The notes beneath the pieces are model-generated. The model made no database searches and was not told the DNA's origin. It was given only the letters and a program-made list of their open reading frames with translations. Source: Pocillopora damicornis (Eukaryota). Taken from it: DNA of 64,000 bases. This document shows, piece by piece, positions 41,469 through 47,876 of the stretch; positions within the stretch are counted from its first letter, which is position 1, and each line of letters starts with the position of its first letter. The position numbers and the translations under genes were made by a program. The DNA lies in NCBI RefSeq assembly GCF_003704095.1, contig NW_020846678.1, positions 1 to 64,000 on the forward strand, read 5' to 3'.

Positions 41469-42968
41469 TTATTTAACAGAGTTCAGCATTATTTCCTTAA
41501 AGAGTTCTAAATCCATCTTTGTAATTAATCGTACATTAACAGGTTTTTGTAGCATTTGCCGCCAATCAATCACCATCTGTCCTCGTGTCAATCCCTCCTT
41601 GAGTTCCACTGTGGCATGAACTGAGGTTTCTTCTTGAACAAACTTTGGTTGTAGAGCTGCACACAATGCAAATGGATCACAAGATATAAATTCACCATTC
41701 ATTTTCTCTTCATATTCTTTAATCTTTGTTGAAATCTTCCTCATGAATTCTGCTCGTTTGGTACCAGCTCCCACATATTGCTCAAAAAACTCCCAATCCA
41801 AAGGGTGCTCTAAACAGGTCTCCCATGATACAAGGGAAATTGGACATTTAAACTGATTAAGGAGAATGTAGGCTGCTTCAGGGTCAGCACCAAAGTTGAA
41901 TTCTGCTGAAACCCAATGATTTCCTTTGCCATGAATGCATCCTCCTAGTATAAATACCTCTTTGACCTTTTTCGTAAATTCAGCATCAAAGTTAGAAGCC
42001 AAAGCAATGTTGGTCAAAGGGCCAAGAGCAATGATGACAATTTCGCCAGGGTTCTCATTCACAAGTTGGACTAAGGCCTGAGCAGCATGGGTTTGTTGAA
42101 GAAGACTTGTATCTGGGTCTTTAATATCAGTGGCATCTCCAAGGCCATCAAATCCATGGTATAATGGTTGCTCATAGGCGATTCCTAACGTTGAAACACA
42201 TAAGTCATGTTTAATTAATTGTTTGTAGACAATGAATCTGGATGAATTGGAACAAGCGAGTGATGTTGCATATTAACACAAAAGAGCCCCTCAATTCATT
42301 AATTACGTCAGCTGAAGTACTTATGCAAACTGTCCTTAAAACTTCCTTTACTGTTGCAATCTCGTAAAATTATGAGGCCCCACACTGTTGGGAAGGGCTT
42401 GCACTTTGAGATCCCAGGTTGGAATGGAGATTTGAATTTCTCCGTAAAAACTGTAAAGCTCAGAGTCTCATTATTCTACGAGTTTCAACGGATTTCCACG
42501 AAAATGCCTTAATATTTATCAAACTGAACATAGCTGATCGTATTATGCCATAGGGTTGATTTTTTCTTTAGGTTTAAGTGAAAAGTCGGAAAACCGTACC
42601 CATTGAGTTTGAGTGGCCTCTTCTCTAATTGCAGCTCCTCGTAGTTGCAGTGTCTGTCACGGTATTCTTTCTTTCCTTGAATTACACTGTTACCCTCGTT
42701 CGATGACATTCAAAATAAACCAGGGAATTTGGTAAGAATCGGAATTAACCATACCTAGTAAAGATCTGTACGCCCCTTTGTACACTGGTATGTCGGTTCG
42801 CTCGCAGGCCTCAAGGACCTTTAGCACGTTCTTGGTAACTTGATCAACATTCACGTTGCCACATGTACAAGTGATGGCTAAGACGTCAACCTCTTGAGAT
42901 AGCGCTATCATGATAGCTTGGGCATCATCAATACCAGCATCACAGTCAATTATAATCTTCATTTTCAT
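41469..42968 (-). CDS. nucleoside hydrolase (IU-NH superfamily), copy 2
   Basis: Exon 42968-42755 (IIDCDAGIDDA) plus exon 42184-41469 (YHGFDGLGD, LGPLTNIA, AEFNF, SCDP, TRGQMVID). Intron in the same position and phase as copy 1. Confidence 0.93.
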
Positions 42969-43272
42969 GTTTTCTTACCAAAGGGAACCTTTCTTTCCTC
43001 AGAAGAGGAGCTTAAGAGACTGGGGCAAGGGTAGCCGTATGTGTTGAGGCGTGGGGCGGGTGGGTATGTCCCGCGGAACGGCCTCTAGACCTTCTTGCAC
43101 TCTTCAGTCTTCATCGATTATTTAATGCTACAATTTCCTTAATTTTTAAAACTAAAAAAGAAGGAAGTGTGCATAATTTTTGGGAACACCGTTAAAACCA
43201 GTTTTTCGGTGTGGTCGTACTAAGATACGAGAGGCAAAGATTTTAAGGGGAGTAGGGTAAGTGAGAACCAGA

Positions 43273-43296
43273 CACGTGCGACACAAATATGGCGGC
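43273..43296 (+). promoter_or_regulatory. E-box (CACGTG) and YY1-like motif (AAATATGGCGGC) in the hydrolase-2/NB-ARC divergent interval
   Basis: Motif matches at 43273-43278 and 43285-43296. Confidence 0.35.
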
Positions 43297-43432
43297 TGCC
43301 TGTAAATCAAAATTGTTGTGTGGTTGTTTCTTCTATAGTTCCGGTTGAAGGAACTGTTTGGTTACAATCATAGAAAATTGTGAGAAAACTCCCCACGGGT
43401 AGCATTCAAGTCAATCGAATGATATTTTTAGG

Positions 43433-45473
43433 ATGTATTCACGTCCTTTGAGCTTGCAAATGACGCGCTGTTTGCGCGCAGTAACTGGTTACTCTGGGAC
43501 ACGAAGGACTCAGGTAAACCTGCAACGAGTTTTCTTAAGGAAACAACCACTTCGCCCGTCTACTACGTTATCTGAAGCAGAAAGAAAGGAAGATTCCAAA
43601 GAAAGCGACGAAGAACCAAAATCCTGGAGAGAAAATCCAACCCTGAAATACTGGGTTCTTGGCTCACTGGGAATCTCTGGCTCTGTTTATTACTACGTTT
43701 ACAGGAATCACGAAAAGAAACGATTGCAAGTAAAGCATTTGCCATCAACACCCAGTCATTTCGTACTTTCCCGTGAACGAGATCTCTCCGCGCTTTTTTC
43801 CCTTCATAGTCAGTTGAAGGGAAGGGAATCTTTAACTGTTCTCCATATTGTTGGCTGTCCCGGGTCTGGAAAAACAGAACTTGCTCGGGAATTTGCCGAG
43901 AAACTCTCCAGAGAGGAACAAGAAAGGTACACCTTTCTTCCAGGCAATCTCTTCTTTGGGACTTTAAATGGTGCATCGGTAGAAAGCCTCCTTTTTGACG
44001 TGAAAAGGTTTGCAATTTCTGTTGGTTGTTTTGAGAGTGATTGGACATCGAAAGCAGGTGAAGGGGTTAATTTCTCCAGTCTGTCCAAGGAAGCGCAGCT
44101 AGACTGCCTTGTTGATGCTGTTAGGGAAAAACTTAAAAACAGCCAAGGCTGGATTCTAATTTTGGAAAATGTTAAAGATAACGAAGCTATGTACCGCTGG
44201 TTTTCTGCAAATTCATCAAAAAATTGGGGTAATGGAACAGTTCTCCTCACAAGAGATGGCCATGTTGACAGTGATGCAATGATCAACAATACTTACAGTA
44301 TTGATGAAGGGTAAGAGCATTTGCATGACTTTTTGCATACCATGGGAAAAAAATCATTTTAACACTTAGACTCCCAAAGGTGATTAACATACAACTTATC
44401 TCCATGATATCTATACATGGTCCAGCAAACAGATAATGAGAATACCCATACTTATCAGGTAGAAGTTGTCATCTTGACCTAACTCCAAATTCTTATTACT
44501 ACTCTACAATAGAGGGGAGAATTATCAATCAGATCTTAGGGTCAATCTAGATGGTTTATTTTCACACACTTTTTAAAATATATTTTGGTAATGAGCATCT
44601 CTCTAAAGCAGTAGTACTTAAAATTTCCAAAACTAGGGGTTTTCGTAAAATTGTAAGTCTGCATGCTATTTTAGTCCCAAACAAATCTGACTCTACTTTT
44701 GTCAATGTTTGCTACTGAATCACAACTGGCATTATTTTGCTTGTGAGTACAGCAATGTGATCATTCTGTCTCAATCATTTTCTTTCTTTCTTTTAGATTG
44801 CCTATGGATGATGGGATAGAACTTCTTTCAAAGTTGAGTGGATTGGAAGGAAACAAGATGACTGCTGCAAAAGACATTGTAACAATTCTAAAGGGGATTC
44901 CTCTGGCTCTCACATGTGCTGGTCATCACATGCAATCAAAAGTGCTGAAAAATCCCAACTATTCCAGTTTAGACTTTTTAAGTGAGTTTAAATCAGAGCT
45001 TCAGAACTTCACAAAGGCTAATGGGGAGATGGCATTAAGCCCCACATATGTCATGGTTAGCATGGAAACAAAAAGCCTTGTGCAGGAAAACTTCCATCTT
45101 CTTCATGCTTTTGATTTTCTGGCAACCTGTACACCTAATTGGCCAATACCAGTGAGCCTCATTGCTCTACATCTGAGGTCACCAGATTTTAATCTACCCC
45201 CTGTGGAAGGCAGTGGACCTGCTCTGCCAAGCCAAAAACCCACTGAGGCTGAACAAGGGAATAGCTCAGAACAAGAGGTAGAAGAGATGTTCCTATCAAT
45301 CAAGAAACTGGCCAAGAACTTGGAGAACTTTATAACAGCAGTAAAAGATAACATTGATGCTATCAGAGCCATGCTTAACCCTGTACTGCCTGATATGCCA
45401 CAAATGTTGGACGGAAATGTGGAGATGTTAAAAGCTTGTCCATTAGTTTCTGTTAGAAGAATGGAGCCCATGG
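43433..45473 (+). CDS. NB-ARC-like STAND P-loop NTPase with N-terminal presequence-like region and TM helix; 3' end lost in gap
   Basis: Exons 43433-44310 (GG|gtaag) and 44797-45473 (G|gtaag). Walker A GCPGSGKT, Walker B-like WILILENV, RNBS-B-like GTVLLTR, GxP motif LKGIPLAL, winged-helix-like LATCTPNWPIPVSLI. Followed by gap 45493-45592. Confidence 0.8.
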
Positions 45474-45910
45474 GTAAGAAAACTGTTTTTTTNNNNNNNN
45501 NNNNNNNNNNNNNNNNNNNNNNNNNNNNNNNNNNNNNNNNNNNNNNNNNNNNNNNNNNNNNNNNNNNNNNNNNNNNNNNNNNNNNNNNNNNNAAACGAGA
45601 CGATCTTGAAGATTTGGTCCAAACCGTTAAAAAACTACGGAAGATCGAAAAGAGAACGTTTCACTCAGATAGGTTTGCTCATTTTGGACAAATGTTAAGA
45701 TAATGAATTTGCCACGGTTTAATAATGAGGACATGCTTTTGACAAACTTTGAACTGACTTGGACGAGTTATGAAGTTCCAAACTTTACCCATCATTACCT
45801 TAGCTCTGGTGACTGTCATAACTCTGGAATTACAGAGTTTACGATTTTAAATAACATTTTTGATCATAGTCAGTGTAACAAAGTTTTGCACTGCCCATTT
45901 TTTTGCTTTC

Positions 45911-46970: not shown

Positions 46971-47876
46971 TTAGACTGGAGCGACTTTGTTACTTCTCCT
47001 TCGAAAAAACTTGCGAGATCTCCCGGTCGTGTGGTCATTTCTTTCTGTTGATGAAGTTTTGTGAGTGACAGAATCGGCAGAGGATGACCGCGGGCTCAAG
47101 CTTCCACGGCTGCTCGGATCGCTGTTGGAATCTTCGGTCGCATTTGGTCTCACCGTTTTCCTTATCTTCTCCATTAGCCGTCCACTTCTAGCGCCTGCCC
47201 TGTCTTCTCGATGCACATATTCCTTCCTCAGTTGCTTTATCTTTAAGCTTTCATTGGCAAGCTGCTCCCTTGGTTTGAGTATCTTGGAATACATCCATTG
47301 CCACTGCGAGGGGCGGGGAGCGGGAAATGAAATTTGACGAGCTCTTCTAGGTGCTGATGATGCCAGATACTCTCTTGCCATGAAACTGTATCCATCATTA
47401 GAATTTTTACCTTGCACTGAATATCTCTCATTTCTCCAGTTTGTGTGACTTTCAACCGGTGCGATTGTATAAGAATCCATATAATCGGTTTCTTGGCCCA
47501 ATCCAGTTATTTCCATGTGTCTGGGAAAACATTTCTTCCCGCGGACCTCCATGGTGCAGGATTCCTCTTGATGCTCGTGTGCATCACTTGTCGTATCACA
47601 ATCGTCTTCTGATTGACTTGATAATGAATCTGATGACCATTCATCATCGGTGCAGGAATAAGACTTAATTTCGATAGTTTCAACGCTGCATGACTCTACC
47701 GCCTCTGCGGTGTCAATGTCCTTCCTTAGCTCCCGCTGAGAATGGGATGAGCCCGTATTTGAAGGGCAGTTGAGATGGATCTCAACCACCGGTGTCTCTT
47801 CTATCTCCTCTTTGATTGTTTTCTCGACTCCAAGGTTCTTGCGATTTACGCAAATCATCGACTGTAAGTTTCCCAT
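46971..47876 (-). CDS. uncharacterised intronless 301-aa, largely disordered protein with N-myristoylation-like start
   Basis: Long uninterrupted ORF in AT-rich DNA. MGNLQS start, Ser/Glu-rich low complexity, ends FFRRRSNKVAPV. Confidence 0.65.
   Translation of the reverse strand: MGNLQSMICVNRKNLGVEKTIKEEIEETPVVEIHLNCPSNTGSSHSQRELRKDIDTAEAVESCSVETIEIKSYSCTDDEWSSDSLSSQSEDDCDTTSDAHEHQEESCTMEVRGKKCFPRHMEITGLGQETDYMDSYTIAPVESHTNWRNERYSVQGKNSNDGYSFMAREYLASSAPRRARQISFPAPRPSQWQWMYSKILKPREQLANESLKIKQLRKEYVHREDRAGARSGRLMEKIRKTVRPNATEDSNSDPSSRGSLSPRSSSADSVTHKTSSTERNDHTTGRSRKFFRRRSNKVAPV

Follow-up and report, generated by a model that had tools for sequence, protein, structure and literature searches.

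The 64,000-nucleotide window analysed here (Pocillopora damicornis, RefSeq assembly GCF_003704095.1, contig NW_020846678.1, positions 1 to 64,000 of the forward strand) encodes, from position 43433 onwards, a nucleoside triphosphatase (NTPase) that begins with a basic leader and a hydrophobic helix, and the question raised by this locus is which protein is made here and where in the cell it would act. An initial annotation had described an NB-ARC/STAND NTPase with an apparent mitochondrial presequence and a stop-transfer anchor in place of a death-fold effector. The comparisons reported below bear out a STAND NTPase of the NB-ARC type without a death-fold domain, whose N-terminus consists of a presequence-like leader and one hydrophobic helix. 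Taken together, they tip the balance slightly towards a reading in which the window holds exons 1 and 2 of a three-exon gene for a roughly 910-residue protein, a cnidarian STAND switch whose leader would direct it to mitochondria and whose helix would anchor the ATPase at a mitochondrial membrane, on the matrix or the cytosolic side.

The gene model comprises the following features.

43433-44310, plus strand: exon 1, residues 1-292 plus two bases of codon 293, with 33 orthologous open reading frames (ORFs) of about 291-294 amino acids
44311-44796, plus strand: intron 1 (phase 2), GT...AG, with the acceptor AG at 44795-44796
44797-45473, plus strand: exon 2, encoding the helical NB-ARC subdomains HD1 and winged helix together with a low-complexity acidic loop and one long helix, with 24 orthologous ORFs
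45493-45592: assembly gap of 100 N, concealing exon 3 completely (about 389 amino acids, TPR) as well as what remains of intron 2
45626-45765, plus strand: stretch homologous to the 3' side of exon 3 in a related coral, probably 3' untranslated region (UTR) or flank

Exon 1 lies in the plus-strand ORF 43433-44314, the same reading as in the initial annotation, and 43433 is the first possible start because an in-frame stop is located upstream at 43400. In three related corals, spliced and transcript-derived full-length ORFs start from the equivalent methionine and include both leader and helix, and the different N-terminus that transcripts might have brought to light was not seen in them. The exon 1 donor (GG/GTAAGA at 44310/44311) allows the frame to be joined to exon 2 as ...IDEG-LPMDDG..., which yields a length equal to that of transcript-derived orthologues. 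Exon 2 in turn ends at a donor (G/GTAAGA at 45473/45474), and similarity to 19 orthologous ORFs ceases exactly at ...EPMG. Position 45473 therefore marks a conserved exon boundary at which the protein does not yet end, and the 518 residues encoded by exons 1 and 2 thus belong to a longer protein. In five studies, polyA RNA runs contained 53-67% of the words sampled from 43200-45490, close to the 68% of this stretch that is exonic. The gene occurs once in the 234-Mb assembly G000, in which the next-best locus reached an E-value of 2e-21 compared with 8e-117.

The missing part was traced with the help of a related coral contig (L016, 80-85% nucleotide identity), on which a minus-strand nucleoside hydrolase gene is followed by exon 1 (293 amino acids), exon 2, exon 3 and a minus-strand gene. 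Exon 3 of L016 is a single 389-amino-acid exon with TPR_12 and TPR_10 domains, about 2.7 kb past exon 2, and the sequence 230-370 bp beyond its stop codon aligns to 45626-45765 of the window (blastn, 73% identity over 142 bp). Exon 3 itself could be found neither in the window nor in G000 (tblastn and genome search; P0059, P0073 and P0208-P0211), where the searches matched only paralogous TPR arrays. Because the 3' match adjoins the gap and the C-terminal part has no match in the window or in G000, the gap must hide the remainder of intron 2 together with all of exon 3. TPR_12 and TPR_10 lie C-terminal to the NTPase in the orthologues P0059 and P0073 as well as in exon 3 of L016, and the C-terminal part of the full-length family profile matches kinesin light chains in the PDB. 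The C-terminal sensor, for which TPR and WD40 repeats had both been considered, is thus by sequence comparison a kinesin-light-chain-type TPR array, seen in full-length orthologues while the window's own exon 3 lies inside the N gap.

Orthologues were identified in Nematostella (LOC5511079, 900 amino acids, full-length), Orbicella (XP_020613898.1, 914 amino acids, full-length), Actinostola (partial) and the scyphozoan Sanderia malayensis (980 amino acids), together with three transcript-derived proteins of 909-932 amino acids, and all of them are labelled 'uncharacterized'. The full-length orthologues (900-980 amino acids) have the same order of parts and all possess the TPR C-terminus. Leader and helix are kept in every orthologue examined, including more than 30 hexacoral ORFs, the Nematostella, Actinostola, Orbicella and Sanderia proteins and clades at 21-31% identity; the initial annotation had singled out conservation of presequence and transmembrane segment in anthozoan orthologues as a test, and the layout proved to extend well beyond close relatives. 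In the literature searched, neither LOC5511079 nor any NB-ARC-TPR protein that is mitochondrial or membrane-anchored was the subject of a paper, and the same holds for animal NB-ARC proteins of this kind. A distant family member on a 1.08-Mb eukaryotic contig (L018, 6001-8836) is arranged as two adjacent ORFs of 348 and 593 amino acids, 7 bp apart, with TPR in the second; this gene adjoins a LIS1-like gene and two Macro-domain ORFs.

The N-terminal region can be divided into four segments.

43433-43573, plus strand: presequence-like leader, residues 1-47, Ser/Thr/Leu-rich, with 9 K/R, 11 S/T and no D/E
43574-43648, plus strand: acidic linker and juxtamembrane motif (KSW-E-N-P-x-x-KYW), residues 48-72
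43649-43702, plus strand: Gly/Ser/Tyr-rich hydrophobic helix, putative membrane anchor, residues 73-90
43703-43723, plus strand: basic cluster RNHEKKR, residues 91-97

The first acidic residue of the protein is E48, in line with the acid-free stretch of about 45 residues noted initially, and the first 40 residues carry a net charge of +8. The corresponding 40 residues of seven other members of the family, with identities as low as 21-31%, have a net charge of +4 to +9 and at most two acidic residues. The composition of the leader is that expected of a presequence (20-60 residues, Arg-rich, hydroxylated, without acidic residues or a hydrophobic core), its maximum 18-residue hydrophobic moment is a moderate 0.46, and no hydrophobic signal-peptide core is present within residues 1-47. 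Across 23 hexacoral orthologues the composition of the leader is kept while its sequence is not, and the helix region is nearly invariant. As this composition has been retained since the divergence of anthozoans and scyphozoans while the sequence drifted, which is how targeting signals behave, mitochondrial targeting is favoured; judged from its sequence, the leader is composed like a classical matrix-targeting presequence and probably acts as one.

The helix YWVLGSLGISGSVYYYVY and the ensuing RNHEKKR are present at residues 73-97 as annotated, with the qualification that the helix is weakly hydrophobic. Around its start, the columns K63, S64, W65, E67, N68, K72, Y73 and W74 are invariant (alignment A1). 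Members at 21-31% identity, including the scyphozoan one, possess an N/G-P-x-x-K motif followed by a hydrophobic stretch, and in several distant homologues the stretch at the equivalent position is plainly hydrophobic (Kyte-Doolittle 1.7-2.4). The distance from helix to P-loop is also maintained, with 68 residues here and 63-72 in the members at 21-31% identity.

The NTPase itself is recognisable by the motif set of NB-ARC proteins, which is both present and conserved.

43853-43876, plus strand: P-loop (Walker A) GCPGSGKT, residues 141-148, with G141, G144, G146, K147 and T148 invariant
44153-44170, plus strand: Walker B-like strand ILILEN, residues 241-246, with W240, L242 and L244 invariant and E245 nearly so
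44894-44911, plus strand: GxP (GLPL-type) motif GIPLAL, with P35, L36 and A37 invariant in alignment A2

In the wide alignment G146 and K147 of the P-loop are invariant as well, and a strand is predicted at 240-245 in the Walker B-like region. A conserved H-L-L-H-A-F-D stretch in exon 2 is a possible candidate for the winged-helix histidine of the MHD/LHD type that contacts ADP.

Assignment by domain databases was less direct. When exons 1 and 2 were scanned separately against Pfam, NB-ARC (PF00931) stayed below its gathering cut-off on exon 1 (16.2 versus 23.5 bits, P-loop region only) and gave nothing on exon 2; AAA_16 reached 26.6 bits on exon 1 against a cut-off of 32.6, again with the P-loop only. 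PF00931 is not listed in the precomputed Pfam results of the full-length orthologues, and NCBIfam returned kinase and ATPase matches only, all of them sub-threshold. PDB sequence searches went no further than matches at the level of the P-loop, or found none, when run with the exon 1 profile or with the protein from Nematostella; Apaf-1 and kinesin light chain were reached with the full-length family profile alone. This profile of seven full-length orthologues aligned with human Apaf-1 (1z6t_A) at an E-value of 4.1e-5, profile positions 109-352 corresponding to Apaf-1 128-349, and also matched wheat Sr35. Kinship with the mitochondrial TPR protein TTC19 was considered and rejected, as no TTC19 chain was among the PDB profile matches.

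Structural models point in the same direction. The NTPase part of the exon 1 AlphaFold model has a predicted local distance difference test (pLDDT) score of 70-88, and its Foldseek matches are led by Dark, NRC2, Apaf-1 and CED-4 (E-values 2e-6 to 1e-4), with ORC/Cdc6 next. In the exon 2 model the first 110 residues reach a pLDDT of about 90, and the top matches, Apaf-1 286-471 (Z 7.7) and NRC2 314-497 (Z 7.0), correspond to HD1 and winged helix; these Z scores are middling and the Foldseek E-value is only 0.19. For the Nematostella orthologue, the Atlas model matches NB-ARC-TPR clusters from bacteria and eukaryotes with template-modelling scores of 0.45-0.55, 6 of 10 rows being below 0.5. The designation as an NB-ARC-like domain is therefore upheld by profile and fold comparisons and fails at the Pfam cut-off, and the predicted protein is a divergent NB-ARC-TPR STAND NTPase.

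A hydrophobic helix at a similar position also occurs in more distant relatives. Among the nearest cluster representatives, 131 had sufficient N-terminal sequence, and 48 of these contain a strongly hydrophobic 19-mer, at a median of 72 residues before the P-loop. One class is bacterial and combines a GerE/LuxR HTH, one helix, NB-ARC and TPR, as exemplified by a Rickettsiaceae protein from a metagenome-assembled genome; when the coral profile was aligned by hhalign with the bacterial protein P0167, the probability was 98% and the alignment started at the helix. The other class is eukaryotic and consists of a DZIP3-like HEPN domain, one helix, NB-ARC and TPR. As relatives carry the helix behind LuxR HTH or HEPN domains, the helix itself is not specific to mitochondria, and because it is common to the bacterial LuxR and the eukaryotic HEPN classes, the module of helix and NTPase looks, from these sequences, older than the coral gene family. 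What is particular to the coral family is a presequence-like tail where the relatives have a folded domain.

Both classes have features of their own. The bacterial proteins P0129, P0135, P0144, P0152, P0167, P0180 and P0203 run from a LuxR/GerE HTH over about 170 residues to a single strongly hydrophobic helix, NB-ARC and TPR, and since the flank charges place the HTH in the cytoplasm, the ATPase would lie outside, which is odd for an ATPase. In the eukaryotic proteins P0093, P0104 and P0184 the DZIP3-like HEPN domain is followed by a helix with a Kyte-Doolittle value of up to 3.0, then by LPxxPxH and NB-ARC-TPR; if this helix spans a membrane, HEPN and NB-ARC are on opposite sides of it.

The localisation, orientation and switch mechanism that we infer for the coral protein can be outlined as follows. 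The leader would send the protein to mitochondria, and the helix would keep the ATPase within about 20 residues of the mitochondrial membrane. Residues 44-72 have a net charge of -3 and the 12-residue C-terminal flank of the helix has one of +3, or +4 if R91 is counted; with an acidic N-flank and a basic C-flank, the positive-inside rule argues for the matrix or the cytosolic side and not for the intermembrane space. The first choice, though on its own less likely than not, would be a matrix-facing ATPase-TPR part, reached by presequence import and subsequent export of the acidic N-tail, a kind of export reportedly described by Rojo and colleagues in 1999. An ATPase-TPR part facing the cytosol would be the alternative and is considered fairly unlikely. 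A ligand on the TPR array would release autoinhibition and permit exchange of ADP for ATP and oligomerisation, as in other NB-ARC proteins, and, because the NTPase begins about 20 residues past the helix, ring formation would draw the Gly/Ser-rich helices together within the membrane. That the helix is itself the effector, such that an oligomerised NB-ARC ring gathers the helices into a pore or lesion in the mitochondrial membrane, is considered highly improbable.

Several observations weigh against a mitochondrial, membrane-anchored switch. By eye, no clear cleavage motif for the mitochondrial processing peptidase was seen in the leader, and in the closest relatives (P0002-P0005, 93-97% identity) the called ORF of 284 amino acids starts at the equivalent of Met10, and the first ATG may be absent there. 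The 19-mer Kyte-Doolittle mean of the helix is 0.5-0.8 in hexacorals, far under the usual transmembrane thresholds, and a crude Hessa sum of about +7 kcal/mol argues against a membrane span, whereas the Wimley-White octanol sum of about -4 argues for one. AlphaFold assigns a pLDDT below 50 to the whole N-terminus, helix included, so that the model is uninformative on this part, and in the relatives folded domains (LuxR HTH, HEPN) precede the same helix. The protein may accordingly not be mitochondrial at all, and the N-tail and helix could anchor it in the endoplasmic reticulum, Golgi, plasma membrane or a peroxisome; the stretch might also not span a membrane and instead be, for example, an element for oligomerisation or latent membrane insertion that was inherited along with the NTPase. 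The poor scores as a transmembrane segment favour this explanation, as does the shared position behind LuxR HTH and HEPN domains, by which the helix predates, and is independent of, any mitochondrial leader. Residues 1-47, however, contain no hydrophobic signal-peptide core, the helix is too weak for the signal recognition particle and Sec61, and a presequence-like composition was kept across the anthozoan-scyphozoan divergence without conservation of sequence. A non-mitochondrial protein or a non-spanning stretch, counted jointly, is for these reasons regarded as doubtful.

Among the mitochondrial arrangements, the one proposed in the initial annotation was stop-transfer, in which the presequence enters TIM23 and the helix arrests there, leaving the N-terminus in the matrix and NB-ARC-TPR in the intermembrane space beside cytochrome c. 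A bipartite leader with helix as in OPA1/Mgm1, AIF, Smac and cytochrome b2 is the textbook precedent for it; the helix is without proline, those of distant homologues are hydrophobic enough for arrest, and the STAND-like NTPase Yme2 is cited in the relevant passage of PMC8195603 as an inner-membrane protein. The hydrophobicity in hexacorals is nevertheless very weak, and for an N-in/C-out protein membrane potential and the positive-inside rule would favour the opposite of the charge order seen here, which is acidic before the helix and basic after it. By this test, which is a rule of thumb and not a proof, stop-transfer is disfavoured, and both this route and an intermembrane-space position of the NTPase-TPR part are judged distinctly unlikely. 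The same flank charges speak for a sensor at the outer membrane or in arrested import, of the PINK1/NLRX1 kind, in which the leader engages TOM/TIM23 while NB-ARC-TPR stays cytosolic, either always or only on import failure, and oligomerisation at the surface reports import or potential stress. Moderate hydrophobicity with a basic C-terminal flank is said to be the signal-anchor pattern of Tom20 and Tom70 (work attributed to Kanaji and colleagues, 2000), and characterised NB-ARC proteins are all cytosolic in their action. NLRX1 is moreover reported to signal import stress through cytosolic retention (PMC10837482). Known outer-membrane signal anchors, on the other hand, are located at the extreme N-terminus and lack a 70-residue leader; this kind of sensor is rated rather unlikely, and anchorage at the matrix or cytosolic face of a mitochondrial membrane is retained as the slightly favoured reading.

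The surroundings of the gene contain one further feature of note.

42969-43432: intergenic stretch to a head-to-head nucleoside hydrolase gene, probably shared promoter and 5' UTR

The neighbouring gene, for an inosine-uridine nucleoside hydrolase (41469-42968, minus strand), has its first IU_nuc_hydro exon at 42693-42968 on the minus strand, and the two start codons are 465 bp apart. The head-to-head order is kept in the related coral (L016, 1212-7096). A short upstream ORF (43419-43451, an ATG and 10 more codons, the last being TGA) runs across the start codon at 43433 in a different frame, and whether it belongs to the 5' UTR depends on the transcription start. On the other side, a 301-amino-acid ORF at 46971-47876 (minus strand) converges on the 3' end of the NTPase gene; its product starts with MGNLQS, of the N-myristoylation type, is Ser- and acid-rich and has no Pfam match.

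Surveys of NLR-like genes in corals and other cnidarians select by the Pfam/InterPro domains NACHT and NB-ARC (PMC10236652, PMC8260672), and this coral family was overlooked in them because it falls below the Pfam/InterPro thresholds and is labelled only 'uncharacterized'. Most coral NB-ARC-TPR genes belong to fast-expanding families; the gene described here exists in one copy and is retained in corals and in a scyphozoan jellyfish alike, a pattern that argues for a core function in the cell and not for variable immune recognition. If the protein is mitochondrial, it would represent a second independent recruitment of a STAND switch to mitochondria after vertebrate NLRX1, and be the first NB-ARC protein to be membrane-anchored there. 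Apoptosome-type machinery would then be physically tied to the organelle in animals for which stress-induced cell death, as in bleaching, matters ecologically. Were the pore interpretation true, a resistosome-like sensor would permeabilise mitochondria itself, and in early animals sensing would have led to mitochondrial cell death with no need for Bcl-2 proteins or for upstream release of cytochrome c. The module of helix and NTPase shared with bacterial LuxR-helix-NB-ARC-TPR proteins is also relevant to the descent of animal NB-ARC proteins from bacterial ones.

The position of the coral protein among known systems follows from these features. With Apaf-1, Dark and CED-4, which provide the best fold and profile matches, it has in common the fold of nucleotide-binding domain, HD1 and winged helix as well as P-loop, Walker B and GxP motifs; it differs from them in the lack of a CARD, in TPR instead of WD40 repeats, in the leader and membrane helix, and in scoring below the Pfam NB-ARC threshold. 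PINK1, OPA1/Mgm1, AIF and Smac likewise consist of a basic presequence, a spacer, one hydrophobic helix and a large functional domain, whereas their functional domains are unrelated, their helices more hydrophobic and their flank charges different. N-terminal signal anchors exist in plant NB-ARC proteins, namely flax L6 and M. The combination of NB-ARC with TPR is the usual and a common one in corals (PMC10236652), and the order of NB-ARC followed by kinesin-light-chain-type TPR_12/TPR_10 is shared with cnidarian and bacterial NB-ARC-TPR proteins. Those proteins, many of them in expanded families, carry folded N-terminal domains (HTH, HEPN, death-fold), while the coral gene is single-copy and slowly evolving and has a presequence-like tail only.

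The initial annotation's statement that no example had been described was too strong in view of two precedents. One is NLRX1, a matrix-resident STAND protein whose mitochondrial targeting sequence is functional and which has been proposed as a sensor of import stress (PMC10837482). Like the coral protein, it combines a STAND NTPase with a mitochondrial targeting sequence at the N-terminus, where a CARD or PYD would otherwise stand (a candidate leader in the coral case), and it differs as a NACHT-LRR protein without membrane helix, confined to vertebrates and without homology beyond the P-loop class. The other, Yme2/RNA12, is cited in PMC8195603, with reference to Hanekamp and Thorsness 1996, as a STAND-type NTPase associated with mitochondria and an integral protein of the inner membrane; it belongs to another NTPase clade, has an RRM domain and no TPR, and no similarity to the coral protein was detected. 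Given NLRX1 and Yme2, a STAND protein at mitochondria was already known, and what is new is an NB-ARC-TPR protein with a presequence-like leader and a helix.

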